Positions 18,563-48,790 of a stretch of 48,790 nt of DNA are shown here, in pieces. Below the pieces are notes generated by a model. The model made no database searches. It was not told the DNA's origin and saw only the letters and a program-made list of their open reading frames with translations. Source of the DNA: Macrostomum lignano (Eukaryota); NCBI GenBank assembly GCA_002269645.1, contig NIVC01002453.1, positions 1 through 48,790 of the forward strand. Direction: 5' to 3'. The translations under genes were made by a program, and so were the position numbers. Numbering within the stretch: the first letter of the stretch is position 1; each line of letters begins with the position of its first letter.

Positions 18563-18706
18563 TCTCTTGAATTATTTTTCTACACAGACGATGCGCGGGG
18601 CTGGGACAGGGTTCAACTAATCGGGTGCGGTTGTCAAAGAAGTCTGAACATTTATGATCCAGAAAGGAGTTGCAGATGTAGCAATGGAATAGCGTCTCGT
18701 TGTTCT
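18563..18706 (-). CDS. Quiver/sleepless-like Ly6 protein, internal exon
   Basis: ccattttag|AG...GAG A|gtgagt. Encodes NNETLFHCYICNSFLDHKCSDFFDNRTRLVEPCPSPAHRLCRKIIQE and splices in phase to the 18335 exon; 10 Cys in total. Confidence 0.85.
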
Positions 18707-20090: not shown

Positions 20091-21756
20091 CAAGTTATTT
20101 TTGAAATCAACTTTGATAAACTATGCATAGGAAGTTAACATATGAAACAATGAGAAAAATATTCATAATGGATAGAAATGAATAATACTGTGCTTGATTA
20201 GCCTTTTAAAAATTTTCAATTCAATTCTAGCTCTAAACAGGTTGGTACTTGTTATGATGAATACAATTTACTTGCATTGGAATTCAAATCAAAGATAATT
20301 ATCATATATAACAATATTTAATGCAGAAAGCATTTAAAAAATACATTTTGAAAGATTCTACAAGATGTCTGAATTTGCAAAGTTGTCAATAATGCTTGGC
20401 AATACTTTTAATAAACATACGAGTATGACATACACCTTCATAGGAGCACTTATTTGGTGATTGCCAGAAGTGCTCTTATTATCAGAGGAACAAGAACCAC
20501 AAACTATCACTCCATTTCGTTCAATTGCAATGGCACATTTAGCCAGATTAATCTAGAACAACCCAAGGTCAAATCAAAGTTGAACAAGCTCTTAATTGAT
20601 ATGAGCAAAGTATTGATAAATATAGCCAATCAGACATCAAATCATTTGTTTGCAGGTAACTTATCTGACATCCACAGAAGCTTCAATACAAGTTTTGTGG
20701 AAGAACTTATGTGTGACATACTAAAGACATACTAGGCAGGCAAGTGTATGCATATTAAAGAGGCAGTTGGGAGATAGGGACTTATACATTATTCTTATAT
20801 TTTAATATATTTTGAAATTTTATCAAATGAAACAGATGTTGATTCAAATTTACAAGTTTATAGACAAATATTTGCATTGAAAATTTTTGGAGTTTTGACT
20901 ACTAGTAGATCACAACCTGAGTAGTACCACATTCTATAAAAATCATGTTCTAGTTCTCCATGTTCTATAGATAATGCCAATACCAATGATAAATAAACTT
21001 CACAACCTTTTTTAGAAAGTGACATTTTCAGGACTTTATTACATCAAATTGAAACATTTCAATATACTTGTCTAAATTTAGGTTTTTATATAGACTTTAT
21101 TTATAATATGTATATCATTTATACTAAATATCTTCAATGAACAGTGTGAACTTTAAATAAGGTTTCTAGAAAGAAAAAAGTAAAACAAAATTCTTTTGTT
21201 TATATTTCTTTGCTATTTGTCTAAATTTGAAAACAATTTCTAATAAGAATTTTTTATCAAATGGTGCATAGAAGTTAAAATAGAAATAAAATCTGAGCAA
21301 ATTATAAATTAGAATTATAAACAAAATACTAAGAGCTAAGAATTTAAAATTTAGCTACTTGTTGACTTGGGAAGCCTCAGTTAGATATGCATTTTATTTC
21401 ATTTTCAATTTTAGCTAGGCTCAATATGTTATTATACAGAACATTTTAGTATATAGAAATCTTAGATCTTCAAAAAATGTGCACTATATAGGTTTATAAC
21501 AGCAAGAGAAAATATAAATTCAAAGCTTCTGCCTTAGCATCTTTAGAAAAATGATAAAATCCAAGCATTTAAAATGTATGGGTTGGAGAAATATTGTGCA
21601 ACTCACTGCCTTGCATAGTAACATATAGGTTATGATACAACTCACATTTTTGGCAATCAATAAAAATCTCAGCCAGCTAAGAAAATATGACCTTTAAAAA
21701 TAAGGCTAAAAATCCAAGCTTTTCATATATGCACAACTTTGGAAATTACCTGGCTG

Positions 21757-21860
21757 TTTCTATTTGTAACACACATATGTAAGTTGCTATTGGCTGAGAA
21801 TAGTCACGTGACTACTGTTCTGTCCAATAGCGACTTACATGTGTGTGTTGCCAAAAGAAA
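21757..21860. repeat. Imperfect ~104-bp palindrome centred on TAGTCACGTGACTA
   Basis: Left arm TTTCTATTTGTAACACACATATGTAAGTTGCTATTGG pairs with right arm CCAATAGCGACTTACATGTGTGTGTTGCCAAAAGAAA. Confidence 0.85.
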
Positions 21861-23220
21861 TGGCCAAGTGAAAATGGCCAAGCAAGGTTGCACCCAAGCA
21901 TGAAGCTTTTTTAACCTTTGATCTCTTTAAAAAAGAGCAATTCTCTTTTTAGTCAAGAGAACCATACCAATTTGCAAGAATTACTAATTGAATAGTGCAA
22001 GTTTCAAAAATAAATAGTAAGATAAATTATTGTAATATATAAATATACATAAAAATACTTAGACCAAGGGTAAATTATAAATTTGAAAACCCTTTAAAAA
22101 CTATTTACCTTTCGAATAATATTTGATTCAAACAAAATTAATTTATTGTTTTTAGGTCATTTGCAAAACTTGATTATACTTTTAGTAAAAACTGAATTGT
22201 ATAACCAATGTAATATATTCTCAATGAGAATTGAAAAAAATTTTTTTTGATTGGCTGATTTTGTTATATATTGTATTTGGACCCCTTTCTTTGGTATGTC
22301 ACAATTGGTTGGAGTGGATTGGTTGTATTAATGCTGTCTGGTATAGGACCCTAGGGCTTATGCCAAGCAGTCTAAATATAATGAGAATTGCTGGCGGTAA
22401 GCAGGGGGTACGCAACCTTGCAATTTAAAATAGACCTTCAAACAGAATACTGACTATCGAAAATTACCTACTTAGCTAATCACGCCACCTGCTTTTGATG
22501 AGTCATCCATACACTGAGTTGATCATTGCCAATAAGTTTATGTTTGAGTTACTATTTTCGGAATTGTACTGGACTTGGGAACAGTGTTTGGGAAGTTTAG
22601 GGACAGACTGTCAACACTTCTTGATGCAACCTCCACTCAGAACCAAAGCTCAGTCCAGCCAGCGGACTAAAGCAAACTTGCGCTTGCCTGCTGGGAGTTC
22701 TCTTAATTTGATTAGACAGTCTAACACAATAATACTAATTAGCTAATTAGCTAACAAGGCATTCAGTCATTATAATACCATTATAATTATTCTTGCCATT
22801 TACCCAAACATGTTAACTTTTTTGATCAAAAAGTAAATCATATTTATATATCCAATATTAAACATGTATAGTAAAACAAAATTTTACTAGCTTCCTATAG
22901 GGCTAGAAATTTTTCAGTTTTTTGTAGTCAAATATGTTTATATTCCATTGCAATTACTACCTTTTGTTATATTCCTTTAATTTGCAATGGTTTTTAATTT
23001 TTTAGAAGCATATGTTTTTCCTATTTTTAGCTTTATTTTATAAATTTAATATAAAACTTGACCATTCTGGACTAACAAACAAACAAATATTAGAGATTTA
23101 GTATATTTAGATATATAAAGTTTATCCAAGTATAACTTTTGGACTTCTTGAACTTTGGGTAGATAAAATAGTTTCAGTTTTGATAAGCTTATACTTTTAT
23201 CTTTTATAAAAAGATTACGA

Positions 23221-23285
23221 AGTTACGAAGTGGCAAACGGCAGTTACTGTTACCGAAGTGGACTGTTACCAACAATGATAACGGA
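23221..23285. repeat. 65-bp dispersed repeat, copy 1
   Basis: AGTTACGAAGTGGCAAACGGCAGTTACTGTTACCGAAGTGGACTGTTACCAACAATGATAACGGA, identical to 29405-29469. Confidence 0.9.
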
Positions 23286-24448
23286 GTTTTCTCCATTGGA
23301 ATAAGCTGACAAATTGTAGACACGTGTCTGTCGCATTTACAAAATTTTTCCATGTTGCGTCGCAGTGGAGTTTTCAGTGGGTGGGTCACGTTGCCATCGC
23401 GGAGTCCATGGTTTTGTTTGGTAGTGTTACAACACTATTGCAGTTGTCAGTCACCACAATTAATGAACATACAGTCAGAAACCGTATCCAGGTCTTCATT
23501 TTCTGGGTTTTTGTTAATATAAGTGTCATTATGTCAAGAGATGAGCTTCTTGTATTTTTTTGTTTTATCCTCTTCTTATTTGTTTCAACTTACTTTTAAA
23601 TTATTTACAATATAACATGTGAATAGATAATATTTGCTATTGCAGACTTGAAGTTACAGTTTCTTGTTCTCTAGTTTTGATTTTAACATTTTTTCACTAA
23701 TGACAAACATTGAGAATTGAGTGAACTGAACTCAGATGAAGTGACTGCTAGGCCAGTTAATAGCCTACTATGAATTATGAAAAACAAGTAACAAGTAATA
23801 CTTATTAGTTACAATGCGTGCACTGCTTTTTTAACTGCTGTACCTTTGTTGTTTTACTTTTATTGTTTTTTAATTTCATTTCTTTTTCTGCAAAATTGAA
23901 AGGAATACTCTCATCCCTTGTTTTATGGTCTCGGTCTTGGGAGTGAACTGCAGAACAGGAATTGTCAATTTAAGTGAATGCTCTCCCCCCAGTTATTTGG
24001 TTAACAGACATTGGTGTTGCGTTGCCCCCCTCTCTAGTCAACAAAATTTGGTGTCACGTTGCGCTTTTGAGGGCACAACTTTGGCACCTGTGTTGGGCAT
24101 CTGCAGGTTTTTGAAACTTATTCCAATAGAAGTTTTTGATGGTGCTGATTTCAAATTTGAACTTCATTCTTTTGTAGCTTAAAGCCAACCACAGGGGCAT
24201 GGGGAATGGGGGGTTTTAGGGTGGGGAGAATAATAGAGAATGATTTTACATACCTAAACTTCAATAGAGGCATGGAGATTTATTGAAGATTAGGTAGATA
24301 AATTTGGAGGCTAAGGGGGTCCAGAAGGGGATTGTAATAAAGCTTAATTAAATTAAAAATTCAGCAAGTTATTAAACACTTCCATTCTATGGAAAAAACT
24401 ACAATTCTATCAAAACTACATGCAATAAATATTAGCAACTATACTTAC

Positions 24449-24499
24449 CGTCAAAATGGAGAAGACAACATAGATGACAACCATGCTAGTGACAACCAT
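24449..24499 (-). CDS. Candidate signal-peptide first exon (MVVTSMVVIYVVFSILT), possibly of the quiver-like gene
   Basis: ATG plus hydrophobic run ending at consensus donor ACG|gtaagta. It is phase 0, which does not match the phase-1 acceptor at 18706 unless the adjacent AG (exon start 18704) or an unseen exon is used. Confidence 0.3.
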
Positions 24500-25295
24500 G
24501 ATAGAATGACAGCAAATCAAAAGCAAGAGGTGAGGGTAATGAAAACACTAATTTGATGTGGCACTTTTGCTATACTATAATAAACTAGGTGAAAAAATTA
24601 AAATAGACACTCTTTATTACAGTTAAAATTCTAACCCTCTATATGTTCTTTTAAAATGATTTTGTTAAATTGTAGAACATATTTGGCAAAATCCAAAAAC
24701 ATGGGATAAAACAATAAAACAAATCTGCTGACATTTGATAGAAAGTAATGTATCTAAAAAAGGTTTTTGAAAGATAGATAGGTCTTTAGTTCTAGATAAA
24801 AACTAGTTTTCATGCTTTATATTGTTGAATAAATAAGAAAAAACCACAAGAAAAGCATTTTAAAAGTCCGAGTTGACTGATTTGCATTTTTTTGTTTCAC
24901 TTTTTTTCATTATTAAACAATTAATTTTAAGACTTGTAGGCCTTAGAGAAGGCTAATTTTTTTACTACTTACAAAACAGAATAAATGTGTTTTACTTTTT
25001 ATTCTATTCAAAAAGATGAAGTATTTCTAAGGATTTCAAAGTTTTTCTAAAACCACATAAACTCGCAAAAATTCATACTAATTTAAAGTTCAAAGTTTGC
25101 CAGCAAACATCTTTCTCTAAAAGTAAATATATTGTAATTCCTTGTTGCAAAATAATCTTTAAGTTGTTTTTTTTCATTTAAATATCAACTTGCATAGTAT
25201 TAATATTTGTAATATGCCTATATTTAGACTTAAAAATTTTGGGTAAAAAATGGTACCACAAAATGTAAACCTGGCATCCAAATCAAATGCATCCT

Positions 25296-25798
25296 ATTTG
25301 CTTATTAAGCAACAAAGAACAATGAAATTACACTAAAACATGTATCACCGCAGCGTGTATGCAGGAAAAAAAAGAATTTTCCAAATTGCTTTAGTAGAAG
25401 CTGAGTAAAATGCAATTTTCCAATCCTTATGGGAATTCCAATTTGTTACCTAGCTTCTAAATCAGATCAGATGCTTACTGTATGCTTATTAAGCGACAAA
25501 GAACAATGAAGTTACACTAAAATATGTATTATCACGGCGTGCATGCAAGAAAAAAAAATTTTTTAAATTGCTTTGGTAGAAGCTAAGTAAAATGCAATTT
25601 TCCAATCCTTATAGGAATTCCAATGTGTTACCTGGCTTCTCAATAAGATGCTTACTGTATGCTTATTAAGTGACAAAGATTAATGAAATTATACTAAAAC
25701 ATGTATCATCGTAGGGTGTATACAGGAAAAAAGTATTTCCCAAATTGCTTTAGTAGAAGCTGAGTAAAATGCAATTTTTCAATCCTTATGGGAATTTG
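25296..25798. repeat. AT-rich tandem repeat, ~180-bp unit, about 2.8 copies
   Basis: GCTTATTAAG...AGTAGAAGCTGAGTAAAATGCAATTTTCCAATCCTTATGGGAATT recurs at about 25300, 25484 and 25662. Confidence 0.88.
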
Positions 25799-26869
25799 TA
25801 TGTTTAAATAATAAACTTATGTTGAATTTAATTTATTGCAAATAAACTCTACAAAATACACATTGTCAAGAGTAACGAAAGTGATAAACAAATAAACCTT
25901 TAAAAATATTGTTAAATGTGTCAGGATTGTGTGCATTCTGATAACTGATTCTACTTGTTATAGAATTATAGTATAACATTAAAAGATAGTTAAAGTTAAT
26001 AAAATACATTATTATAGCTTTTCTATCATTTTCATTAGTCATTTTAGGTCATAATTAAACTTACCATTTTAATAAATCATTTTATTAAAAATAAAGCTAT
26101 ACATAAATAATTGGTACTTTTATAGACTTTTTTCCTTTTAAAAACTTAAATAAATTTATTTTATAGCTTTATTGCTTTCAAATTGCCAAAAAATGAATTT
26201 TATAAAACTTGCCCTTGATTTTTGGATTTTGCCATTTATATTTGAAAGTCACGATTCTAAAAAGTTTAATTCTCAAACATACAATTCCATAGTTCGGAAC
26301 ACTCTGTATGTACCCCAGAAAAAAAACTACCATTTTTTTTGTGTACGCCGATGTACGCCATATATCTTTGTGACGTTGTCGTTTACAGTGCTTTTACTTG
26401 CTTTTACAGTGCTTTTGCTTTTACAGTGATACTTTACTGGACTAGTGATATTGATATTTAATTTTAAATTGTCAATGTTGAAAATGGAAAATAACTTTTT
26501 TATTTATTTGTGAGAACTATTAAAAAGTGACAGTTTTATATGTACAACAGTTTATTTATAAAATTTAGGTAAAATTTGTGCATTTTTTGTTAAAATTACA
26601 ACTTCACCACAAGCAAAAAACACGGAAGTCAGTTCTGCATCAATTGTGAAATTTTACAGTAAATGCATAATGAACAACTTTGTAACTGTTATTGATTTCA
26701 CTAGGTTACGAATTTTTTATTTTTTGGTGCATGTTACACACCAAATTATTAAACATGGTTAAACATGTACGCCAAAAGCCTTAGAAAATTACTATTTGTA
26801 CGCCAACATGTACGCCAAATTTCTTGACTGTACCCTGGAAATTTCCGGCGTACATGATGTGAATAACTT

Positions 26870-27075
26870 ATGCCGCATGTTATTCCGTACGTTATTCCGC
26901 ACGTAATTCCGCATGTTATTCCGTAAGTTATTCCGCACGTTATTCCGTACATTATTCCTCATGTTATTCCGTATGTTATTCCGCATGTTTTTCCGTACGT
27001 TATTCGGCACGTTATTCCGCACATTATTCTGCACGTTATTCAGCACATTATTCCGCACATTTTTCGCATGTTATT
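26870..27075. repeat. 12-bp tandem array (TTATTCCGCACG), left arm of an inverted pair
   Basis: Tandem units; the reverse-complement array is at 27920-28235. Confidence 0.9.
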
Positions 27076-27919
27076 AGGCATTTTTCCACAATGTTCTGTA
27101 TAAAATTTACAAGTAATTTTTCCATTTGATAAATTTTAAATGTAAAGCAAAAGCCTAATGTACATGAGCTTGTCGTTATATTTTCCTGGATTACGCGAGT
27201 ACATGTACATGGCATTCGTAAAATTATAATTGACTGCAACAGAGTACTGTAGTTGCAGAGTTGTAAGTTGAGTTACAGAGTTGCATGCACAGAGCTGGGG
27301 TCGCGGAGAGGTTGAGAAAAGAAGATAAAAGTGACTACTTATCAACATATATTAAATTACTGAAAGAATCACATCAAATATGTACAAGGTCACTACGGGA
27401 CGCAAAATAAAGTGTTCTTTGATACTGAAAGAAGTTTACGCTTTAATAAGTATTATAAGTGCTAACACCAAATAAAGAACTAATGTGTAGTAAGTAAACC
27501 GTATTACTGCATTTAGCTAATTTAGCTTTTTTCAATTATATTTTATGCAGATCGTCATACTTATTAAAAACTATCTAAAACTTCACGTTTTTGATGTGGA
27601 AATCATGTATGGAACGCGTAAGTTAGACTAGGGGCCTTTTCATATGACCAATTCCATAACCAGAATCGGTTCGGAATTCCAAGAAAAACAGCAGTATAAC
27701 TATTAAACTCTGTTAATATTTGACTGCCTTAACAATCTCACTTAGCCCAATTTTTCACTTTCTTCTTGGCGATTGTCATTTAATAATAAAAACTTTATAG
27801 CACGTATCTCCCTCTAGTTATGGAGACTAAAAGTTATACTTCACAAATTGGTTCTGGTTCTAGAACCAGAACAAGCAATATGAAAAGACCCTTGGTGGGA
27901 AATATGTTAAAAAAGTAGA

Positions 27920-28235
27920 TGTGCGGACTATTGTGCGGAATAAAAATTCAGAATAGCGTGCAGAATAATTTATTCGGAATAATGTGCGGAATAATGTGTG
28001 GAATAAAATGCGGAATAACCTGCGGAATAACATGCAGAATAAAATTCGGAATAGAGTCCAGAATAATGTTCGGAATAATGTGCGGAATAACGTGCGGAAT
28101 AACATGCGGAATAACATGCGTAATAACGTGCGGAATACCGTGTGGAACAACATGCGGACCATGCGGAATAACTAGCGGAACGTGCGGAATAACGTGCGGA
28201 ATAACATGCGAAATAACATGTGTAATAACATGCAG
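27920..28235. repeat. 12-bp tandem array (GTGCGGAATAAC), right arm of an inverted pair
   Basis: Reverse complement of the unit at 26870-27075. Confidence 0.9.
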
Positions 28236-29404
28236 TGTATGTTACACTCATGCGTACATGCCCTCTTCCGAACTATGGATACAATTCTCTGAAACTACTT
28301 GCATAAAATTATTACTAATTATGTAGAGGATGCCTCTAAGACTCTAATGAAAGTTTCAGAAAAATTGGAAAATTAGAAGTATTTTATATACCTAAAGTTC
28401 AAGAAGTCCCCAGAATATACTAGTGTAATGTATGTCTAACCCCCTTTTGCTCTATTTGCTTTTTAGGCCAAACATTTAAATATAATTGCTTTTATATACT
28501 GTAGGCAATTTCCATGGTAGACAAAAAATGTTCTTTCATAACCAGTGCATCCACGAGACCATGGACAAAATTTAGTCTAATTTTATTTATATTTATTATC
28601 AAAATTATTTTATTTATTGTTTTTTTATTATTTTTTTTATAAAAAGGCCCCTAAGCTTAAAATGCTTATTTACTCTTTAAAAGAAAAAAACAAACATGTT
28701 AAACTTTTTCTAAGAATTATAGACAAGAGCTACGAACATTTAAAAAAAACCTCCTGTCTTTATAGGCCTAATTAATATAATTATATTATAAGTTTTTCTT
28801 TTCAAATTGTTAAGTTACAAAAAGAATAAGAAAATACAAAAAGCAATAAACTACTACTATCTATAGCCGATATAGGCAGGAATAAAATTAAGTATACTTT
28901 TATGTTTGGTTTTACGTCATTTAAAGTCATACACACAACACACTTACTGGCACCTGGAATACTTACTTGCAATTGAATTGTCAGCATACAAAGCTTGTCC
29001 AATGCATAGTGTAGGCAAAATGCATAGGCTTACAACAAAAAATATAAAAGGATTTAGATTACATAAAGACATGATTAAAGTATGCTTATTATTGATGTTA
29101 TTTGCAAGGTAATGAATTCGGACGCGTCAAAATGTATGTCAACGCGTTTGGCTCTATTCGACTAGGCCTACGGAAGTAAATTGATTTTATTTACACACTT
29201 TAAAATACAACGTATTACCTGTTATCGATGAAAAACAAAGTACACAAATTAAAACTTTAGTTCTGAATTTAAAACTTATTTTTTAACTGCAGAGAGTGTT
29301 TTAAACATTCAGACACAAAAACAAAGCAATTTTTTAAACGAAATTACTCTCCGTAATTGATTTCTAGCAAAACGCACGCCACTGCACAGTGGCCAGTAAG
29401 TGGC

Positions 29405-29469
29405 AGTTACGAAGTGGCAAACGGCAGTTACTGTTACCGAAGTGGACTGTTACCAACAATGATAACGGA
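29405..29469. repeat. 65-bp dispersed repeat, copy 2
   Basis: Identical to 23221-23285, same orientation. An extra TACCGAAGTGG motif lies at about 29523. Confidence 0.9.
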
Positions 29470-30241
29470 ACAATGTAGTCAATGTTTATAATGCATAATA
29501 TTAATTAGATATGAGATAATGCTACCGAAGTGGATTGTATTCCATCCTAGATCCCAGTGCCAGGGGCTAGCCTGGCTAGGGCCTATCACAGCAGGAACTG
29601 AATATTTCTAAACTGGCTCTTTACCGAGTACCAATAAGCCTAAGGGGCTAGGGCTTAGGCCTACAAAGTACAAAGTTTGATGTTTTGGTTACAAGTCTAA
29701 CAGTTATGTTCAAAAATTCTACTTTAGTGCCTAAGTAGTAGGCCCCTAGGCTCTAGTAAATTGCTACAAATTTAAGTTAGTCTAGGGCCTAGTCTATCAA
29801 CTATATAATCTATGACAAGTCCTATGGTACAGCCTACACTAGCAATGTTTGCCATTTGATACCTCAGTATTCCATAGCAGACAGTTCTTATTTAGAGGTT
29901 TTGCCTGGCCCTATTACTAGTAGTACTTAGATATGTTTTTGTATAAAGCCCTATATTCTAAGCCAAAAATATTGTCCAAAATATCCTAGTTGTCAAAATA
30001 CTAAATAGGCCAAATAGCAAAGTACATTAAATTATACATTTTTATGTTTTATTCCAAGCATTTATATAAATTTGTTTTTCTATTAGCCTTAGTTTTTATT
30101 TTTATTAGGCCTAGGCCTTATGCAAGGCATTTATGCTAGGCCTAGGGCTAATTTGAGACCCAATTTGCACTTAGGAATCAGGTAAAATGGCTCGCTTAAT
30201 GAAAAGTAGATAAATAAAGGTCAATTACTCAATATCAACAT

Positions 30242-30413
30242 TAAGTATTAGTTATTTATTTGAGTTGCTAATGCATTTTGTCCAATATTGGACATCTTTA
30301 GGGTCAAAATTTATTTGATATGATGACACATATCTTAATGATAAATTTTGACCTTGAAGATGTCTAATATTGGACAAAATGCTTTAACAACTCAAATAAA
30401 TAACTAATACTTA
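30242..30413. repeat. Long near-perfect hairpin, ~72-bp arms with a 26-nt loop
   Basis: 30242-30314 (TAAGTATTAGTTATTTATTTGAGTTG...GGTCAAAATTTAT) is the reverse complement of 30341-30413 with few mismatches. Confidence 0.9.
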
Positions 30414-31880
30414 TATTGCTCTTATGAATTCTAGTATAAATATAATAAAATAGGCCTAGAATATAACTTAGGCCTATATATTGGCTAAAACTTCAAATAC
30501 AATATCTTTTTTTATCAATAAAAACTCTACCTATAAAAATCAAAACCATCTATTTGTCTATCTATATATATCTATACATAATTTTGATTGTTACAGACTC
30601 CTAAACGACTCAACCAAATTATACTAATTTTTGTACCCATTATAAATAGAATGTGGTTTTGTTTGCTATCAGTTTATCTGCCGATAGACAAAATGACTTT
30701 AGTGATAGATGTGTTAATTGCTTGTTTTCATATGACTATATGACACATTATATATTACATGATTAATTACTTAATTCATGCTTAGTCTCAATATTCAAAG
30801 CAAAAGGAAAAATGTTATAGTTTCTTTATATGCTATATAGGGCCTAACATAATTTGAAGAGATGACATTGTATATTTAGCTTTCATTTTTAACTGTGATT
30901 TTAAACTTTGATTTAAATGTTTTAATGTGATTTTGTAATAATAATATATTTATCATACATTAAGTTTATTACTATTTGTAATTCTACAAGAAATGCATAG
31001 AGAAATATATGAGTTTTGTACTTTGTATGAAATTCCTACCAAAAAGTATATTCAAAACCTGAGATGAATCTATATTCATGGTAATTATTCTAATTAAAGT
31101 AGCATTAAATAGTAAAAAATGTATGCTTATTTGCAGCAAATACTGCTCTTTACACCAAAACATGCTTCATTGTTTTATTGCTAGGCATTGTTTTCATTGG
31201 ACACCACAGTAGACAAATCATCTACCATAGCATAGACCTCTAGAAGACAAATTGACAGCAGACAAAATGATATGCACCCCCCTAAACTTATTAAAATGTC
31301 TTAGGCTACCTTAAAATTTTCTAAATTTAAGTCTGCCTATCTAAAAATGCAAAAAAAACTGCTAAAAAGTGCATTATTAATTAAATTTTTAAGTTTCAAA
31401 CTTTATCCTGTTATGCACTTTTAAAGTTAGTCTGCTTTTTGTCAGCAAGACAGCCATCCCAAACTCCACCTCTTCTTTCCTTATCTGCAAGATGTGGAAA
31501 AGAGGGTTTCAAAATTTAATAAATTTTGGCTGCCATTAGTTTGTTCCACGTGAACCAATTGACTTTAAACTTTACAAGATTCTTCATTGGCTTATTTCTT
31601 TATCTAAATGTAAAGTCTCAACTCTATAACTCAATTAGAATAGAAACTGTAAACATGTAAAGTTGGTCTTAGAGTCACTTTCTTATTTTACCTATGTCAC
31701 CACAGATATTAGAATAACTAAAGGAGCCACTCAGGTGTATATACTTTGTAAAACAGCTTTTTACTTTGTGTTCAATAGCAATAATACTCGTAGTAAATAA
31801 TAATTGATTACACATACCCTAATTGGTAGATGTGCAACTGGCAGCTTTGCTGCAGCTATTGTGCGGCACATCAGGCTGCA

Positions 31881-31920
31881 TACAGCTGTTCACTCCAAGG
31901 ACTGGGGGTTGTCATACACA
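31881..31920 (-). mobile_element. 3' fragment related to the SINE at 34374-34606
   Basis: Minus strand TGTGTATGACAACCCCCAGTCCTTGGAGTGAACAGCTGTA resembles SINE body TGTGTGGCGACCCCCCTCCCCAGTCCTTGGACTGAACAGCCGTA. Confidence 0.55.
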
Positions 31921-31929
31921 CCCTTGACC

Positions 31930-32843
31930 ACTTGTCTGGACTAGTGGGTGGGGGCATTGTCGTGATAAAGAAGCACCCCCGAGCTCGAGTCCTTGGGCGG
32001 CGACTGGAGAGACCACTCAGCACTTCTGGCAGGCAGTAGTTAGTTGGTATAACAGTTGCCAGCGACTGTGTGCTGCTGCACAAGTGGCACAATCGCTAGA
32101 TGACCAGCTTTTGTCACAAAAACGACCAATATCTGCTTTGCCACGTTGCGCTCTTGCTGCAGCTTTAATGGTGGGGCTTCCAGCTGGTGTCCACTGGCCC
32201 GACTGCTGCTTGGTCTCTGGGTCGAAACTATAGATCCAGGATTCGTCACCACTGATGATTTCCCGGACCGAGTTTGAGCGGCCACCATCGAATCTGTTGA
32301 GTATGCATGGCACAAAGCCACCCGAGCCTCCTTTTGCTCCTCCATCAGATGATAGCATGCATAAACCTTGCTCAGGTGCAGGATCGTGCTGATGGTTCCT
32401 GATGAGATGCCCACTTCTGTCTCTATCTGGGTCACAGTTTCTCTGGCATCATCCTCAGTCATGCCCCGAATAGCAGCAACATTCTCTTCGCTTGCTGTGG
32501 ACTTGGGCCGGCTGTTGCGCTCTTCATCATCCAGACTCCATCGGCCACGTCAAAATTCGGCAAACCGCTCAAAAACTGTGGTCCTGGAAGTCCCTCAAGA
32601 CTTAAAGTCGCTCAAAGCTTTCCTGCTGCCTTAGACCACTTTTTGTTTTTATTAATTATCATAGTTAATAATTGTTCTCCATTCTCCAATGGCCTATTTT
32701 GAGCTCCCAGCGCAACACAGGCTTTTTAGAGTGAATTTGTCTGAAATCGCTCAACCATAATCACAAGATAATGTACATAATACCTGCTATGCCAAATTGT
32801 GTACATCACCTTCCCACTTTGGTAACTTATTGCATACCCCTCG
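31930..32843 (-). mobile_element. 3'-truncated defective mariner transposon
   Basis: TIR TA|CGAGGGGTATGCAATAAGTT at 32843. Broken transposase GRPKSTASEENVAAIRGM, IISGDESWIYSFDPETKQQSGQW, HDNAPTH. No second TIR found. Confidence 0.88.
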
Positions 32844-36586: not shown

Positions 36587-36699
36587 AGACAGTAAACTTA
36601 GTTTTTTCTTAACTGTATAATTGTTTTGCAATTAATTCATGCTGTGCCTGCCTTAGCCCCAATAAATTTAAAGGGCTACGAAATTTTTTTTTATCAAAC

Positions 36700-36979
36700 A
36701 TGACGTCTCCGGCATCAGGAGCCGACAAAGAGTCGGCGGCATCCTTGAGCACCAGCTGTTGGCACAGCCTGCCGCCGCTGCAGCAGCAGCACGTGTTCCC
36801 AACGATGGCTAAACTGGACGATACCCTGTTCGTGATCGGCGGCTGCACCCAGACTGGTCAGCCGATTGACTCCTGCGAAAGTATTCGACTTGGCAGCGGC
36901 GATGGCGATATTGCCGGGTCCTGGAGCGCAGCGCCCAGCCTGCCAACACCCAGGGCTGGCGTGCAGCTTGCGACTTTGG
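36700..36979 (+). CDS. KLHDC8: Kelch-only protein, KLHDC8A/B-like, exon 1
   Basis: WHSLPPL...LFVIGGCTQTGQPIDSCE...LPTPRAGVQLATLG resembles KLHDC8A (VYAIGGCDDNGVPMDCFE...LPTARAGVAVTALG) as recalled. Donor G|gtgagc, phase 1. Confidence 0.85.
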
Positions 36980-37040
36980 GTGAGCCGAAATAAAGGGTTC
37001 TTAGTTTTAATCCGATTGGCTTAGGGCTTACTAGATCGTG

Positions 37041-37345
37041 TCTGATTGGTTGAAATCAAACACTGGCTTCTTGTCAGTCTCTGATTGGTTGAAATCAAAC
37101 ACTGGCTTCTTGTCAGTCTCTGATTGGTTGGAATGAAACACTGACTTCTTGTCAGTCTCTGATTGGTTGGAATGACACACTGGCTTCTTGTCACTGTCAG
37201 TCTCTGATTGGTTGGAATGAAACACTGGCTTCTTGTCAGTCTCTGATTGGTTGGAATGACACACTGGCTTCTTGTCAGTCTCTGATTGGTTGGAATGAAA
37301 CACTGGCGTCTGATTGGTTTGAACGTAGAATTGCTAGGCTTGTCT
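37041..37345. repeat. Intronic minisatellite, 39-bp unit TCTGATTGGTTGGAATGAAACACTGGCTTCTTGTCAGTC
   Basis: About 7 copies in kelch intron 1. Confidence 0.95.
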
Positions 37346-37436
37346 GTCTCTGATTGGTTCATTGGTTGGGTAAATATTGTTCGCTAATTGGTTTGCGGTT
37401 GTAATTAGCAATCTCTTCAATCCAAATTTAACGCAG

Positions 37437-37745
37437 ACAAGCGGGTGTACGCCTTCGGCGGCTCCGGCCCAGGCCAATCCGGTGTGGCCACTATTGACGC
37501 ACTGGACGTTGAGTCGCAGCAGTGGCTGGAGCTGGGCCGGCTGCCCGTCGCCGTCAAGAGCTGCTCCGTAGCGAGTCGCGGCGGCAAATTTTTCATCGCA
37601 GGCGGCATGGAAACGGCCACTTCGACTAGGAACGAGTTTTATTGTTTCGATCCCGAGCGTAAAAAGGTTGGCAACTTGCCGCCAATGAGTGTTAAAAGGT
37701 ATTCGCCCGGCTGCTTCCTGGTTGAGGAATCGCTTTATCTGTTCG
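37437..37745 (+). CDS. KLHDC8: KLHDC8-like, exon 2
   Basis: Acceptor tttaacgcag|AC. Encodes (D)KRVYAFGGSG...FFIAGGME...LPPMSVKRY...LYLFG. Donor G|gtgaga, phase 1. Confidence 0.87.
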
Positions 37746-38335
37746 GTGAGATTTCCTTTGCTATCTCAGGGGTGAAATTTTCACTGCTATCTCAGAGATG
37801 AGGTTTTCACTGCTATTTCAGGGATGAGATTTCCACTGCGACCTCAGGGGTGAGATTTCCACTGCTATTTCAGGGGTGAGATTTCCACTGCTATCTCAGG
37901 GTGAAATTTCTACTGCTGTCACAGGGGTGAGATTTCCATGGCTATCTCAGGGGTGAGATTTCCATAGCTATCTCAGGGATGAGATTTCCACTGCTATTTC
38001 AGGGGTTAGACCTTCACTGCTATCTCAGGGGTGCGATTTCCACTGCTATCTCAGGGGGTGAGATTTTTACTGCTGTCTCATGAATGAGATTTCCATTGCT
38101 ATCTCATGGTGAGATGTCCATTGTTATCTCATGGGGAGATGTCCATTGTAATCTCACGGTGAGATGTCCATTGTAATCTCACGGTGAGATGTCCATTGTT
38201 ATCTAACGGTGAGATGTTCATTGTAATCTTACACGGTGAGATTTCCAATGCTATCTCACGGAAGGTGAGACTTCTGTAGCTACCTTAGAGTAAGATTTTC
38301 TTTTGCATCACATGGGATGAGATTTCCACAGCTCT
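37745..38335. repeat. Degenerate 26-bp minisatellite GGTGAGATTTCCACTGCTATCTCAGG beginning at the splice donor
   Basis: The first unit is the exon 2 donor itself; the next unit starts at 37771. Units shorten and decay toward 38300. Confidence 0.9.
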
Positions 38336-38511: not shown

Positions 38512-39104
38512 TTACGAAATGTTGAGCATTAATTTCCAAACGGTTAGCAACAGTGGCAGCAGCAGCGGCAGCTCAGCTTGAGCTAGATTTCCGTCATTGT
38601 GCAGCAGACTGCTCAGCGGCCCATTGTCGCTGCCATTGTGCGGTCTGGCTGGCAACCCTATCAGCCGGCAGGCTAGGCCATAGATATCTGTCTGCTCGGC
38701 TGTGCTATCCGTTCGGGCGCCTTTGACAAATGCCGGACCAATGGCCAGCAGAGGCACCTGCATCTCGTCCCAGTCCGGCTCTCCGCCGTGCATGCCCAGC
38801 TTCCAGACTGTGTCATTATTGTCGGCGATTTGATAGCCTTTGACTGGCATTATAAGTATATCCGGTATTCGTCTGTGCCTCTTATAGTGCAAGTGATCTG
38901 GCAGTTCCCGACGGTGCACAACATTTGCCATCTTGCTCTTGCCGCTCTTTCCAATGTCTTCTAGCATGGCCGAGTACAGCTCCATCGATCTGTTCGGCTT
39001 GGCGAATAGGCCTAGGGCGACGCCCATCTGCAGCACTGCTCTGGTAGCTGGGTGCTTCCTGCCGTTCACTCGGATCGTGTTGTTGTGATTCACTGGCAGC
39101 ATGC
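38512..39104 (-). CDS. ENPP: ENPP4/5/6-like ectonucleotide pyrophosphatase/phosphodiesterase, exon 3
   Basis: Acceptor aactcccgcag|GC completes SDHG-M. Contains RIPDILI, GMHGG, MQVPLLAIGPAF and a hydrophobic C-terminal tail. Confidence 0.9.
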
Positions 39105-39139
39105 CTGCGGGAGTTTTGAGGCTTTGTTTAAAGCAAATC

Positions 39140-39548
39140 CTCAGTTGCTGGGCCACCCTCCCGGATCGTCAGTTGCTGGGCCACCCTCCCAGATCCCTAG
39201 TTGCTGGGCCAGCCTCCCAGATCCCCAGTTGCTGGGCCAGCCTCCCAGATCCCCAGTTGCTGGGCCAGGGCCACCCTCCCAGATCCTCAGTTGCTGGGCC
39301 ACCCTCCCAGATCCTCAGTTGCTGGGCCAGCCTCCCAGAGTGTCAGTTACAGGGCCACCCTCCCAGATCCTCAGTTGCTGGGCCAGCCTCCCAGAGTGTC
39401 AGTTACAGGGCCACCCTCCCAGATCCTCAGTTGCTGGGCCAGCCTCCCAGAGTGTCAGTTACAGGGCCACCCTCGCAGATCTCCAGTTGCTGGGCCACCG
39501 CCGCCCTCCCAGATCCTCAGTTGCTGGGCCACTGCCGCCCTCCCAGAT
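39140..39548. repeat. Intronic minisatellite, ~28-bp unit CAGTTGCTGGGCCACCCTCCCAGATCCT
   Basis: Fills ENPP intron 2. Confidence 0.93.
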
Positions 39549-39589
39549 ACTAAAGGTCAAGACTAAAAAGCAATCCAAACGAAGCTTAC

Positions 39590-40320
39590 CGTGATCAGAC
39601 GTGATGATCACATTGACCCGCTGTTGCATGCCGCGCTCCTGCAGCTGTCTGAGAAACCGTCCGATCGCCGCGTCGATCTCCGCCAGCACGGGTCCCACAG
39701 CGCCTGGTCCTTGGCCGTGCGCGGTGAAGTCTGGCTCGTCGTGATACGCCACCACCAGTCTGGCCTGGCCGTTAGTCAGCCAGTCCAGCACCCTGTCAAG
39801 CCCGGCGCTGAGCTCCGGTGATTGCGCAACTTTGTCACCCCGCTTTTCTGTCCGCGGCGTCAAGTAGGTTGGCAGTCGGCCACCAATGGCCACGTGACCG
39901 CCGGGCCACCTGTACACACCAGCGCGCAGGCCGCTCGCTTCCGCTGTCAGCCAAATTGGCTCGGATGCGTTCCACCAACGCTCGTCGTCAGTATTAAACA
40001 TGTCGACTGTTTCATTGAAAACCGGGTCGAACATCTGATTGTTGACTACGCCGTGAACCTCTTGGTGTTGGCCAGTAACCATGGTCCAATGGTTGGCCGC
40101 TGTTTTGGTCATGTAGGCCGGCTTAACCCTGGCCGCGTAGGCGCCTTCTATTTGCGCCAGTCTATTCATATTTGGCGTCTCATTAGCGAATAGTGTCAGA
40201 TAGTCGTGCCGAAAGCCGTCCAATGAAATCAGTAGTAGCGGCGGCTTTGTGCTGCTGCGGCTTTCTTTCAGGGCGGCCGCTGAAGCCAATGGTATCAGCA
40301 GTAGAAGTAGAAGTCCTTGG
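39590..40320 (-). CDS. ENPP: ENPP-like, exon 2 (signal peptide end and catalytic core)
   Basis: Acceptor ttttcag|C. Motifs LLLISLDGFRHDY, TKTAANHWTMVTG (catalytic Thr), WWNASEPIW, YHDEPDFTAHGQGP and NVIITSDHG. Donor G|gtaagc. Confidence 0.93.
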
Positions 40321-41038
40321 CTGAAAAGTTGAAAAGAACGAAAAGAAGTTTACGATAGAATAAAATAGGGTTTGAGATTATACTGCAGGCTTGTTATGAA
40401 GCAGGTTTGAGAATGTACTGGATCGCTTGCTATGAAGCAGAAGGTTTGAGCTTATACTGGAGGCTTGCGATGTAACCGAAAGGATGGTTGAAATGGGTCG
40501 TATAAAGTTTGTCAAGACACCAGTGTCAGCACTTTTAAAGCATCTCAGAATTAAATTTAAGTTACTTATATTTTTGCTGCATTTCAAACGCTATATTGAC
40601 AATATACTTCCAACAATAGGGTTCCATAGTCTCATTCAGTTAAATGTTTAAGTTAACTAGTACTTAGCTACTTGTCATTCTATTGTCTGTCATCTGTCAA
40701 GCACTATCTAAAGGATACGACGATTGTAAGGATTGTCTTGACAGTGTAATTGCCAATGGCATCGCTTTAGCTATCGATCCTATTCTGTTAGGCATTCAGC
40801 CGCAAGTGTTGCTTGCTGCTTGAAGCCTCTATTTATTATAAGGCGTTAAAGAGAATTCGGCGAATGCTATTTCCTCTCCGCTGGGCCAGCTGAGTACCTC
40901 TCTCCTGCGTTGAGCATTCTTGAGTGCCGGAATGCCGCTCAACAGAAAGCAGACAGCCCGGAGTGAAGTCTTGTCTTTCTTTTTTGACAGATGCAGCTGT
41001 ATCGGAATTTTTCCCAGTCGAAATTCTCTAAAACTTAC

Positions 41039-41055
41039 CTGAGTAGGTGATTCAT
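41039..41055 (-). CDS. ENPP: ENPP-like, 17-nt first coding exon (MNHLLS)
   Basis: ATG AAT CAC CTA CTC AG|gtaagt is phase 2 and matches the 40320 acceptor, giving the signal peptide MNHLLSQGLLLLLLIPLASA. Total 446 aa. Confidence 0.75.
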
Positions 41056-42292: not shown

Positions 42293-44656
42293 GACTGCCT
42301 AAATGTGCTGCAAAGTAGAAAAACGGTAAAAATGACATTCACACATATTCTAATTGGTATATACTGGTGTAGTTGCATGAGACATGAGACTAATCGCACA
42401 ACTTATTTCCCTAAAACCCGTTGGCAGCTCATATCGATATACATTAGCTGGAGTTTTTTAGCTCTCCTTCACGCCGTATCCCGCACGCAGCGGCGGCATT
42501 ATGCGGTTGTTTGCGATAGACAAACTGTACCAGCGTCGCGTTGAAAGAGAGGAAAAAGGGGGAGAGGCGGGTGAGACTGAAAGCTTCTCCCAAGTCTCTG
42601 AGGCAACAATGCCCGCCGTGTCTGGATCTTGGTGAATCGAACAGCTCCGCTTTACACGGCGAAGTGTCAAACTTGCTGATAGATGAAGTATGTGCAAAGC
42701 TGCTTTGAAAGCAATCAAATTTTGTTCTAAGATATATAAAGCTACTTTACAGCAAGACACAGTTAAATTGTTTTTTTTATTCAAATCGTAAAATAATTGT
42801 TGCTTAAAAATTGCAATCATCACTGGTTGTCATAATAAAAGCCAGCAGAATTCGCGACTAACAATACTGGAATAGCCTGGGTAAAATGGGGTTGCTGCTG
42901 GATGCCAGAGCGATCCTAAATTAAAATGATTCCTAAATGATTCAAGCGCGCATTATCTGTGCTATAAAAAATTCATAACTGAAACGAAGAAGGATCCATG
43001 ATGCGAAGATAGGCTTGTCGGGAATCAGATGGCAGATCAATGCCGATTCTCCTTTGTGTTGCAACGAGCAACTCTCCTCAAGCATTTGTGCTGCTATTGT
43101 TTGCCAAAACTGCCAGTTCTAAAACGGGAGCCCTAAATCAAAGATGGCAATTTGGGATAAAGCTAGTTGCTTTTTATTTGAGTAGCTTTTCATGCAGTTG
43201 ATGGGAGCTCAAGCGTGCCGCCAATGCTGCTGCTGCTACATAGTTACGTTTTTTAGTTTAGTTTGTTGCTTAAACGCGGCTGGTTGCTTTGTGACTTTAA
43301 AGCCCTAGCCGCTTTTGAAAACAACTCATATTGGCCTAATATGTCATTAGCGCATAGGCGCTGTAAACATCTGGCTTTTTAATTGTGATTATAAATGCAG
43401 CTGCTAATAATTATGGATGGGGCATGGGATGAGTGAGGGTGACGTTGCAGAATGCGATCTGGGCAGTTCTTGCAGTAGCTCGGAATCCTATTTTGCTACC
43501 ACTCTTGCTATCTATAGCCATATTTGATGAACAGTTTTGAGCCTCGGCGGCCGTCTTCTGTAGCTCTTCTTTACAAATATAGCCCCAGAAAAAGATCAAC
43601 CTATCAGAAACGTGTTTGCAATCTGGTACAGAGGGGTGGAACCACCCCCTCTATGATGAGAGAGGCTAGATGTTTATAAGTTATCTATATTTTAGACGGA
43701 GTAGCTAGCAATCGAACTTTTGTTAAAGAGCTACTCAGAAAAGTAAAATTATTAAGAATTGAAATGGTCAAAAATCAAACAGAATAGCCTGTGCGCTCAT
43801 TCCAAAGTCGAACACATTCGTTGCACTCTTATTCTGGATCATGCAAAAAGATGTACAACTTGCGCACTTAATCTAGCTGCTGTTGGCACAGCGCGCTTAT
43901 GCCCAGTGTTATGCGCGCATATCCAGTCCTCTCCCCCACAGTTCATAGAATCCGCGGGCATTCTACAGTGCCAGCCCCAACCCTTATAGTGCCATATTGC
44001 GCCACTGGGGTTCCTTGCGATTTTATCGTTAAGCTCACTTTCAGCTTTCGAGTGCGTTGGAGTGAAATGACGACAGAAAGTGAAAGTTGCTCTGGTCCTG
44101 TGCTATTGTGGACTGCACCATTCACCAAGTATTCGTATATCGTTTTGACAGCTCATATTTGCATAGATCAGCATCGGCTTGGAGTTGATGCTATGCTCGA
44201 AACATCCTAGTCAGATGAAGATGAAGTGAGATGCTCTCACTTCCGCCTGGCTGACTATTTGTTGTCGTGACTAGAAGCACTCTAGACAGTTCGAGTCTAA
44301 TTTACAGTAAGATTGCAATACGACTTGATACTGGGCTCTTCTCAATCTATGATCTGCACCTGGATTTTAAAACAAATAATTTATAGGCTTACGCTGAAAA
44401 CGGCCATTTAGTCCGCCTTTTTCAAAATTGCAATGATTATTTTGTTTTACTTGAGTTGTCCATGGCGTTTAATGATAGAAACTGTTGTTATTAACGGTAT
44501 TGCAAACGGTAACGCAAGCGCACTTAAAGCCGCAGTCGATTTTTACTTTCATTGTCACTGTTATCAGTTTATAATAGGAATCAGTCGGATATTAGTAGAT
44601 CGAAATATGGCCGGCTCTCGGGGTCGATTCGATAAAAGCTGTTGCGCTTTCATGGC

Positions 44657-45001
44657 TCACTTGCCCCACTCGTACCACTTCTTCTGCTGCTGCCGTCCGA
44701 CTCCTCCTTGCTGCCGATGCTGGCGAAGGAGCTTGAAGCCAACTTCAGGAACCGGGTAGTTCTCGTCCGTGTTTCCTGACTGCATCAGCTGCGGCTCCTC
44801 CTCGCTCAGTAGCACGGAAGCCGCCAGCCGGTTAGCCAAATCGTCGTACCGATCTCGGGCTACGTTGCGCACTCCGGAGTTCTGCGGCTCGGACACTGCG
44901 GCGGCAGTGACGATGCCAGTTTGGCTACTGATTGCCAGCAGTAGCAGCGATGTAGCGGCTGCCAGCGCGAGCAAATTGGGAATGCTGCGTTGGGACGGCA
45001 T
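44657..45001 (-). CDS. Putative amidated neuropeptide prohormone (114 aa)
   Basis: Signal peptide (LLALAAATSLLLLAISS), acidic spacer, and C-terminus GR-QQQKKWYEW-G-K-stop. A CAG acceptor directly precedes the ATG. Confidence 0.75.
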   Translation of the reverse strand: MPSQRSIPNLLALAAATSLLLLAISSQTGIVTAAAVSEPQNSGVRNVARDRYDDLANRLAASVLLSEEEPQLMQSGNTDENYPVPEVGFKLLRQHRQQGGVGRQQQKKWYEWGK

Positions 45002-45289
45002 CTGTGGGTAGTAAGAGTTTTAAAAAAACTGGTTCACAACTGCTCGCTTTTCTAAAACATTATAATCTGTTGCTTGTACATGTATTTCTTTGAGTACTTT
45101 CTTGTGGCTCATTCGTGTGTCTTGTTTATTTGTTTAACTGGTTTCGCGAGTTTCGTTCGCAGCGCACCTGCCTGAGTGTTGAAGGTCGCAGCGGTCGGCC
45201 CTCGACAGCTGTAACCCAGCACAACATCAATAAAGCTGAGCGACTGGTAAACTAGAACAGGCAAATAACCTACGACGAGTTACAGTCGC

Positions 45290-45821
45290 AAAGAAGATAG
45301 TCGCCTCCTTTATCACCGCCTCCGGCCATCTGGTGTCGGTGCCCCTGGAGGATCATCGCACGGTGACTGCGGCATGGTACACCAGCCATTGCCTTCCTCA
45401 GGTCATCAGCGCTTGGTTCCAGAGGCGACAAAACACGAACCCGAGGCCTCCAGCTGCACTAGGACAACGCCAGCACCCACACTGCACGCTTGACTTCTGC
45501 CTTCCTGGAGCAAAATGGAGTCAAGCTGGTCTCCCACCCACCCTACTCGCCTGACCTGGCCCCCTGCGACTTTTTCCTGTTTCCGACAGTCAAACAGCAG
45601 ATTCGGGCCAGCGATTTGAGACCCCAGAGGCAGCCCTGCAAGCTTACATGCATGCAATTGACACCTGCCAAGTTCGGCCTTCTCACACGCTTTTGAGCAA
45701 TGGTTTCGCCAAATGGAGAAGTGCATCGCTACTGGAGGGAGTTACTTTGAAAATTTTAGAGTTTTGTTTTGTTATTAGCATTATAACCGTTCCGTTCTAA
45801 AAACTTTCGGAGTGACCCTCG
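45290..45821 (+). mobile_element. 5'-truncated mariner fragment
   Basis: VPLEDHRTVTAAWYTSHCLPQV and HPPYSPDLAPCDFFLFP motifs. Right TIR AAAACTTTCGGAGTGACCCTCG|TA. Confidence 0.9.
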
Positions 45822-47398: not shown

Positions 47399-48790
47399 CG
47401 ATCCAACCCTGCGAGTCGGCCCAATCCAACCTGCGAATCGGCCCAATCCAACCCTGCGAATCGGCCCAATCCAACCCTGCGAATCGGCCCAATCCAACCT
47501 GAGAATCGGCCCAATCCAACCCTGCGAATCGGCCAATCCAACCCTGCGAATCGGCCCAATCCAACCGTGAGAATCGGCCCAATCCAACCTGCGAATCGGC
47601 CCAATCCAACCCTGCGAATCGGCCCAATCCAACCCTGCGAATCGGCCCAATCCAACCTGAGAATCGGCCCAATCCAACCCTGCGAATCGGCCCAATCCAA
47701 CCCTGCGAATCGGCCCAATCCAACCCTGAGAATCGCCCAATCCAACCCTGCGAATCGGCCCAATCCAACCCTGCGAATCGCCCAATCCAACCCTGCGAAT
47801 CGCCCAATCCAACCCTGCGAATCGGCCCAATCCAACCCTGCGAATCGGCCCAATCCAACCCTGAGAATCGGCCCAATCCAACCCTGCGATCGGCCCAATC
47901 CAACCCTGCGAATCGGCCCAATCCAACCCTGCGAATCGGCCCAATCCAACCCTGAGAATCGCCCAATCCAACCCTGCGAATCGGCCCAATCCAACCCTGC
48001 GATCGGCCCAATCCAACCCTGCGAATCGGCCCAATCCAACCTGAGAATCGGCCCAATCCAACCGTGAGAATCGGCCCAATCCAACCCTGCGAATCGGCCC
48101 AATCCAACCGTGAGAATCGGCCCAATCCAACCCTGCGAATCGGCCCAATCCAACCTGAGAATCGGCCCAATCCAACCGTGAGAATCGGCCCAATCCAACC
48201 CTGCGAATCGGCCCAATCCAACCTGAGAATCGGCCCAATCCAACCTGCGAGTCGCCCAATCCAACCCTGGAATCGGCCCAATCCAACCCTGCGAATCGGC
48301 CCAATCCAACCGTGAGAATCGCCCAATCCAACCCTGCGAATCGGCCCAATCCAACCCTGCGAATCGGCCCAATCCAACCCTGCGATCGGCCCAATCCAAC
48401 CCTGCGAATCGGCCCAATCCAACCCTGCGAATCGGCCCAATCCAACCTGCGAATCGCCAATCCAACCCTGCGAATCGGCCATCCAACCCTGCGAATCGGC
48501 CCAATCCAACCCTGCGATCGGCCCAATCCAACCCTGCGAATCGCCAATCCACCTGAGAATCGCCCAATCCAGCACTGAGAATCGCCCCAATCCAACCTGA
48601 GAATCGCCCAATCCACCTGAGAATCCCCAATCCACCTGAGAATCGCCCAATCCAGCACTGAGAATCGCCCCAATCCAACCTGAGAATCGCTCCAATCCAC
48701 CTGAGAATCGCCCCAATCCACCTGAGAATCGCCCAATCACCTGAGAATCGCCCCAATCCACCTGAGAATCGCCCCAATCCCACCTGAGAA
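47399..48790. repeat. Intronic minisatellite, 22-23 bp unit CCAATCCAACCCTGCGAATCGGC, shifting to CCAATCCACCTGAGAATCGCC
   Basis: Runs to the window end; source of the spurious 309-543 aa ORFs. Confidence 0.97.

Follow-up and report, generated by a model that had tools for sequence, protein, structure and literature searches.

An orphan gene of the flatworm Macrostomum lignano encoding a possible small precursor of an amidated peptide

The stretch of DNA considered here, called the window below, is the contig NIVC01002453.1 of the Macrostomum lignano assembly GCA_002269645.1 (Mlig_3_7), 48,790 nucleotides (nt) in length, and its minus strand carries the gene BOX15_Mlig010817. The coding sequence (CDS) of this gene at 44657..45001 is complete and single-exon, with 114 codons and a TGA stop, as read from the list of open reading frames (ORFs) and the translation. 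The ORF of 345 nt begins with the ATG at 45001 and ends with the TGA at 44659-44657, and its product of 114 amino acids (aa) is MPSQRSIPNLLALAAATSLLLLAISSQTGIVTAAAVSEPQNSGVRNVARDRYDDLANRLAASVLLSEEEPQLMQSGNTDENYPVPEVGFKLLRQHRQQGGVGRQQQKKWYEWGK, after which the stop follows. The product of Mlig010817 is labelled in GenBank as "hypothetical protein". The features described below suggest that this may be a lineage-restricted orphan gene encoding a secreted prepropeptide, which would most likely act as a small prohormone, a reading that we put at a probability of about 45%.

The identical protein is encoded on NIVC01002453.1 and NIVC01004471.1, and near-identical copies, PAA72189.1 (99%) and PAA57720.1 (98%), designated BOX15_Mlig010817g1/g2, are located on two further contigs, so that the gene is present in four genomic copies, all with an intact ORF. 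Over 3.3 kb, in which the flanks are counted, the identity among the copies is ~99%, in keeping with the redundancy known for the neopolyploid M. lignano assembly (PMC5730564). Because the identity extends at this level into the flanks, the copies carry no signal on selective constraint. The C-terminal tail is invariant in 4/4 copies, and the CDS substitutions among them are three, all non-synonymous and none in the tail, a number too small to interpret. No second copy or related ORF was found in the window or at the loci of the other copies.

The precursor may be divided into three parts, all given here by their minus-strand coordinates. The predicted signal peptide, residues 1-25 (44927..45001), was delimited heuristically by the hydropathy profile and by inspection of the positions -3 and -1, with MPSQRS as the n-region, approximately residues 7-24 as the h-region, and SSQTG as the c-region. 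Its signal-like appearance is due to Arg5, to an uncharged hydrophobic core with a mean Kyte-Doolittle value of ~2.4 over its best stretch of 9 or 10 residues, and to the polar SSQTG that follows. Small residues occupy the positions -3 and -1 either in A-I-S/S or in A-A-A/V at residue 35, and with the alternative cleavage after Ala35 the signal peptide would extend to 44897. The single-sequence AlphaFold2 model places a helix of low confidence at residues 8-35. The second part, residues 26-89 (44735..44926), is by its composition and charge an acidic spacer or propeptide free of cysteine, with a net charge of -6 over residues 36-89; the entire protein of 114 aa contains 0 cysteines. The third part is the basic tail KLLRQHRQQGGVGRQQQKKWYEWGK, residues 90-114 (44660..44734), which has a net charge of +6 and holds every candidate processing site.

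Within the tail, direct reading gives the hexapeptide QQGGVG, residues 97-102 (44696..44713), between R96, the last residue of an RQHR motif, and R103, with an Arg at P4 of R96 and at P8 of R103. It is followed by the only dibasic site of the precursor, KK at residues 107-108 (44678..44683), by the candidate core of a mature tetrapeptide, WYEW at residues 109-112 (44666..44677), and by Gly113-Lys114-TGA (44657..44665), i.e., an amidation donor glycine, a basic residue suitable for carboxypeptidase trimming, and the stop. The C-terminal run of the precursor is, therefore, GR-QQQ-KK-WYEW-G-K-stop, and in the six-frame scan of the window the motif W..WG[KR] occurred once, within this ORF. The generic features of a prohormone are thus present, namely the heuristic signal peptide, the basic sites KK107-108, R103 and RQHR96, and the Gly amidation signal G113-K114-stop. 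The single-sequence AlphaFold2 model as a whole has a mean predicted local distance difference test score (pLDDT) of 56 and a predicted template modelling score (pTM) of 0.23, with no confident fold, and this low-confidence model, together with the lack of Cys, weakly favours a processed propeptide over a stable extracellular domain.

The coding character of the ORF was assessed with a codon table built from three exons of the window confirmed by Pfam, the Med26-domain ORF and two ENPP exons. The codon log-likelihood amounted to +0.19 to +0.23 bit per codon in frame and was negative in the other five frames, and the GC content at the first, second and third codon positions (0.67/0.44/0.71) was like that of the three reference exons. 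Among the 33 ATG-initiated ORFs of at least 90 aa, this one ranked 4th by codon score, after two of the reference exons and a CCDC137 exon. When the 105 ATG-initiated ORFs of the window with a length of 50 aa or more were compared, 2 ended in G[KR], 12 had a signal-like core, and 1, the ORF in question, had both, whereas the expectation by chance for both features is ~0.1-0.2 ORFs per window. The GenBank annotation was made exclusively from genome-guided RNA-seq assemblies (StringTie/TACO/TBONE) with subsequent use of TransDecoder, and the novel transcripts below 0.5 reads per kilobase per million (RPKM) were dropped from it (PMC5730564). Since the annotation was built from transcript models only, the existence of the gene model implies support by RNA-seq reads. 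Transcription, without which the peptide proposed in an earlier note on this DNA would fall, accordingly has the indirect evidence of the RNA-seq transcript models behind it; the codon usage is coding-like in this frame only.

The surroundings of the gene differ in part among the copies. On the three other contigs (3/4 copies), the ORF falls within a Kelch-repeat model of the opposite strand (5159-18347, 611-12345 and 1716-12345), whereas the Kelch model of the window itself (36643-37801, plus strand) is shorter and lies downstream of the ORF without enclosing it. In the upstream flank of the candidate gene, the interval 45270-45700 (plus strand) contains frameshifted ORF fragments with HPPYSPDLAPCDFFLFP, recalling the transposases of the Tc1/mariner type; the match of these fragments to Pfam DDE_3 (E=0.3) is below the cut-off, and the remnant is common to all four copies. 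Scans of the window found no Rfam families and no tRNAs, and the locus is therefore not a known RNA gene.

The search for relatives returned no family for the protein of 114 aa in Pfam at E up to 10, and the word-indexed search of 5.8 billion proteins returned its own cluster only. The exhaustive phmmer search of 1.84 billion cluster representatives gave one match (E=6.7e-4), a bacterial repeat protein of 2747 aa, which was rejected as a homologue because the similarity, spread over 11 matched stretches, is compositional. The queries based on the tail, i.e., a hybrid of the tail with synthetic WYEWG repeats and the natural 40-residue tail, were 40-62 residues long and contained the exact C-terminal 34-40 residues of the protein; they gave no matches and missed the protein itself, and since the query's own protein was not recovered, these motif searches are uninformative. 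The word index is evidently unsuited to such short queries, and the collections evidently include no other Macrostomum species. Homologues of the whole precursor are usually lacking for short neuropeptide precursors. The name "RxLR effector protein", given to the paralogues in UniRef, is an automatic misnomer: 0/8 Arg are followed by x-L-R, and the label has no basis because the protein contains no R-x-L-R motif.

In the literature, no WYEWamide, YEWamide or WYEWG was found, and the string "EWamide" occurs in one paper, PMC5051934; the gene id Mlig010817 was not found in the literature either, and WYEW and YEWG were not encountered in the searched portion of a lophotrochozoan proneuropeptide supplement. 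The suggestion that the peptide matches no known family is borne out by Pfam, the protein searches and the literature, a comparison in which the neuropeptide precursor catalogues of McVeigh 2009 and Koziol 2016 were not included.

On these grounds, the following course of events may be proposed for the small prohormone. The signal peptide would direct the protein co-translationally into the endoplasmic reticulum and would be removed around Ser25/Ser26 or Ala35, whereupon the acidic, disordered and Cys-free propiece could escort the basic tail to the regulated secretory pathway and its granules. A convertase of the PC2 type would cut after Lys107-Lys108, and perhaps also at RQHR96 and R103, Lys114 would be removed by a carboxypeptidase, and Gly113 would be converted by peptidylglycine alpha-amidating enzymes to the amide of Trp112. 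The predicted product is WYEW-NH2 ([M+H]+ 682.298), or, if KK is spared, pQQQKKWYEW-NH2 ([M+H]+ 1305.638), where pQ stands for pyroglutamate; after its release, presumably from neurons, it would signal through a receptor. A second site of the amidation type, R96/QQGGVG/R103, could possibly yield (p)QQGGV-NH2, with [M+H]+ 470.236 in the pyroglutamate form or 487.262, under the established rules for monobasic cleavage. The M. lignano homologue of pc2 is expressed in the nervous system and essential for post-embryonic development, its knock-down being lethal (PMC4490696), and the prohormones of the same logic in Schmidtea mediterranea, including those of SAWRDMPWamide (npp-5) and V/TPGWamide (cpp-1), have been confirmed by mass spectrometry (PMC2953531).

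The earlier note had listed a signal-like N-terminus, an acidic spacer, the W-G-K-stop end, a monobasic R (103) and KK (107-108), all of which are present in the translation, and it had derived from them a candidate Trp-amide neuropeptide. The sequence prerequisites of such a peptide (signal peptide, KK, trimming, Gly amidation) are in place, so that "candidate" is an apt word, while "neuropeptide" is what we still infer from them.

Several points weigh against the small-prohormone reading. The set of motifs is small, with one peptide copy and one dibasic site, and could have arisen by chance in a secreted orphan; the neuronal site and the mature peptide are predictions; and the gene id does not turn up in the gene lists that supplement four expression studies of M. 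lignano. The annotation is not independent of the codon test, because 114 aa barely exceeds the length threshold of TransDecoder, which is 100 aa by default. The locus is nested in the Kelch gene and antisense to it (in the three other copies) and adjoins the transposon remnant, and incidental transcripts are common in nested or transposon-adjacent settings. Finally, the GTGAG at 44660-44656 (minus strand), which overlaps the stop of the CDS annotated as single-exon, is a possible unannotated splice donor that conforms to the donor motif GT[G/A]AG published for M. lignano (PMC8629364), and its use could swap G-K-stop for a downstream exon in an unannotated isoform.

That the precursor has a single dibasic site and a single copy of the peptide would suit an orphan coding gene with a secreted or membrane-associated product that stays unprocessed and unamidated, the KK and G-K-stop being coincidental. 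An end of the type G[KR]-stop is expected in ~1% of proteins and is found in 2/105 ORFs of the window, the copies are too alike to show conservation of the motif, and the finding was picked post hoc by a reader who was seeking motifs. However, a protein of ~85 aa that is of low complexity, lacks Cys and is modelled without a confident fold would have no obvious function if left intact outside the cell, and the basic residues of the C-terminal half all cluster around two Gly-basic sites in the manner of a prohormone; we consider such an unprocessed product unlikely. The charge split between the spacer (-6) and the tail (+6), with no Cys, has another conceivable meaning, i.e., a secreted non-neuronal peptide, released by gland or epidermal cells for host defence, for the adhesive system or as a reproductive secretion. 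The product would then be the amidated cationic tail with its Trp, such as KLLRQHRQQGGVGRQQQKKWYEW-NH2 (net charge +6), whose charge the acidic propiece would serve to neutralise. The signal peptide and the amidation signal fit this explanation equally well, the restriction to the lineage without homologues is typical of fast-evolving secreted effectors, and the layout resembles that of the amphibian antimicrobial-peptide precursors. Nevertheless, the tail is Gln/Gly-rich and not obviously amphipathic, and those supplementary lists of reproduction-related and position-specific transcripts that were searched do not contain the gene; we regard the explanation by a gland or defence peptide as quite unlikely.

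The locus could also be non-functional, an incidental transcript with a chance ORF called by TransDecoder for having passed the length threshold. Its nesting in an intron of the Kelch gene, in antisense orientation, the degenerate DDE-transposase remnant next to it, the ORF length of only 114 aa and the lack of homologues in the protein searches would all agree with this, and so would the 3/3 non-synonymous substitutions among the four copies, which, at n=3, are uninformative. This explanation appears improbable in view of the codon score, positive only in frame and ranking 4/33, of the exon-like GC content by codon position, and of how seldom (~0.1-0.2 expected per window) a random ORF would combine a signal peptide with a propeptide of partitioned charge and an amidation end. 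The small prohormone is, for its part, the reading that we prefer.

The 5' flank of the ATG, tttttttaaaactcttactacccaCAG (45002..45030, minus strand), includes an acceptor-like CAG at 45004-45002, directly 5' of the ATG and after a T-rich tract. Seven codons before the ATG, it also contains a TAA in frame (45022-45020). The interval of 44657-45020 previously assigned to the gene is correct at its start, whereas its end takes in 19 nt upstream of the ATG at 45001. The CAG had been read as an acceptor, either of an intron in the 5' untranslated region (UTR) or of spliced leader (SL) trans-splicing. In M. lignano, the top cis-acceptor motif is CAG and the trans-splice acceptor is [T/C]TNCAG (PMC8629364); the position and the cis-acceptor motif are as claimed, while the hexamer CCACAG before the ATG has one mismatch to the trans-splice motif and matches it in part. 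The M. lignano SL itself ends in ATG (PMC8629364), and trans-splicing at this CAG would therefore result in an in-frame ATG-ATG with one extra Met. Direct reading also reveals the TATA-like ATTATAAT at 45059..45066 (minus strand), some 60 nt before the ATG, which may be a core promoter and would then give a short unspliced 5' UTR as the alternative to an intron or outron. Whichever of the three holds, an intron in the 5' UTR, SL trans-splicing or an unspliced start, it has no bearing on the question of the peptide. On the other side of the gene, ATTAAA at 44468..44473 (minus strand), 184 nt past the stop, is a possible polyadenylation signal, for which the evidence is weak because the motif is common in AT-rich sequence.

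In the rest of the window, an ENPP-type phosphodiesterase gene (38512-41055, minus strand; 446 aa; Pfam Phosphodiest, E=4e-54) is situated 3.6 kb downstream of the candidate gene on the same strand, a neighbourhood common to all four copies. The 28-bp tandem repeat at 39137-39532 fills most of the gap between the ENPP ORFs 38512-39156 and 39459-40289, overlapping their ends. The Gln-rich ORF of 698 aa at 7194-9290 (minus strand), with the Med26/TFIIS N-terminal domain, is flanked by a dense cluster of minisatellites (3023-3677, 5450-6331, 6815-7233, 9622-10639 and 12027-12963), whose repeat units measure 13-34 bp and number up to 60, the one at 6815-7233 overlapping the low-coordinate end of the ORF. 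Further along, 16001-32000 is an AT-rich block of 16 kb with a GC content of 0.29-0.35, compared with 0.42-0.55 in its flanks, and contains 12-bp and 177-bp tandem repeats, and from 47401 to 48784, up to the contig end, ~62 copies of a 23-bp tandem repeat (91% matches) give rise on either strand to spurious ORFs of 300-540 aa, several of which overlap.

Flatworms depend on peptide signalling for the control of locomotion, reproduction and regeneration, and it has been put forward as a target for anthelmintics; the flatworm peptide repertoire, largely lineage-specific, is still being catalogued. If real, the gene described here would add one more lineage-specific precursor of an amidated peptide to the dozens that flatworms have, as a reasonable candidate and no surprise. 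One may go further and suppose that WYEW-NH2 or pQQQKKWYEW-NH2 is the bioactive founder of a new Trp-amide family, macrostomid- or flatworm-restricted, with its own receptor and unrelated to MIP/npp-5, APGWamide, AKH/GnRH and luqin, which we offer as a doubtful suggestion only. No flatworm other than M. lignano is known to allow stable transgenesis as a routine, and a validated amidated peptide with a single-copy precursor that is easily knocked down would give a tractable entry to ligand-receptor pairing and to the labelling of neuron types; if conserved across flatworms, it would place an extra family on the comparative neuropeptide map of Spiralia. Should it prove to be a chance ORF, or a peptide of glands or of defence, it would illustrate that a signal peptide and G-K-stop are insufficient to call a neuropeptide.

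Among the known systems, the closest to be considered is npp-5 of Schmidtea and Schistosoma, a Wamide precursor like those of the myoinhibitory peptides (MIPs)/allatostatin-B (AST-B), with the peptides SAWRDMPWamide and PNWKDMPWamide (PMC2953531). It shares with the candidate the flatworm origin, the signal peptide before the peptide region, two Trp and the terminal W-G-basic signal (PMC2953531, Tables S4 and S5). Both Trp are receptor-critical in MIPs, the Wamide peptides being 9-12 aa long (PMC7270403) and the planarian npp-5 peptides 8 aa (PMC2953531). However, the Trp residues are separated by four residues in npp-5 and by two in the candidate (W109, W112), and npp-5 carries ~7 tandem copies flanked by KR, whereas the candidate has one C-terminal copy after KK; no sequence similarity between the two was found in any protein search. 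In arthropod MIPs, six residues stand between the Trp. Although the C-terminal signal for a Trp-amide, W-G-K-stop, is there and amidation would follow from it, membership in MIP/AST-B/npp-5 was rejected by the spacing of 2 instead of 4-6 and the single copy in place of a repetitive precursor. The APGWamide family is represented in planarians by cpp-1, with VPGWamide and TPGWamide (PMC2953531). These are likewise tetrapeptide amides ending in Trp, from a small precursor with the last copy at the extreme C-terminus; yet cpp-1 has several copies with KR/KK spacers, and beyond the terminal Trp there is no similarity to the candidate, which, having no PGW in the protein, was not assigned to this family.

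The peptides of adipokinetic hormone (AKH), gonadotropin-releasing hormone (GnRH) and corazonin, of the form pGlu...Trp-NH2 with 8-10 residues, are approached by the product with uncleaved KK, pQQQKKWYEW-NH2, which has 9 residues, is blocked by pGlu and ends in a Trp-amide. In that family the signal peptide is followed directly by the peptide, which has Trp at 8 and an aromatic residue at 4, and the candidate, lying at residues 104-112 of 114 with Lys at 4 and Trp at 6 and 9, was excluded from it. Luqin was also rejected: its peptides terminate in RF/RW-amide and its precursors have a conserved pair of Cys in their C-terminal part, whereas the peptide here ends in EW and the protein is without Cys. 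A likeness to gastrin and cholecystokinin (CCK) serves as a lead only: the C-terminal tetrapeptide of gastrin/CCK is Trp-Met-Asp-Phe-NH2, and the candidate, too, has Trp-x-acidic-aromatic-NH2 near the C-terminus of a small precursor, after an acidic stretch. The family possesses a sulfatable D-Y and [W/H]-M-[D/R]-F-amide, and protostome CCK/sulfakinin peptides end in RF/RW-amide; in the candidate there is no D-Y (the Tyr lies between KKW and E), the terminal residue is Trp and not Phe, and no homology is detectable, on which grounds CCK/gastrin/sulfakinin was dismissed. The gastrin/CCK system is not known from the flatworm phylum; common descent with the candidate is unlikely, and that its end represents a very divergent gastrin/CCK-like signal is hardly credible.

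The amphibian antimicrobial precursors consist of a signal peptide, an acidic propiece, a basic site and a cationic peptide with a Gly-Lys end that gives an amide, and this layout they share with the candidate. Unlike them, the candidate has a Gln/Gly-rich tail that is not clearly amphipathic, and it belongs to an unrelated phylum and is without sequence similarity to them. The candidate departs from each specific family with which it was compared; it would act like any small amidated-peptide prohormone.

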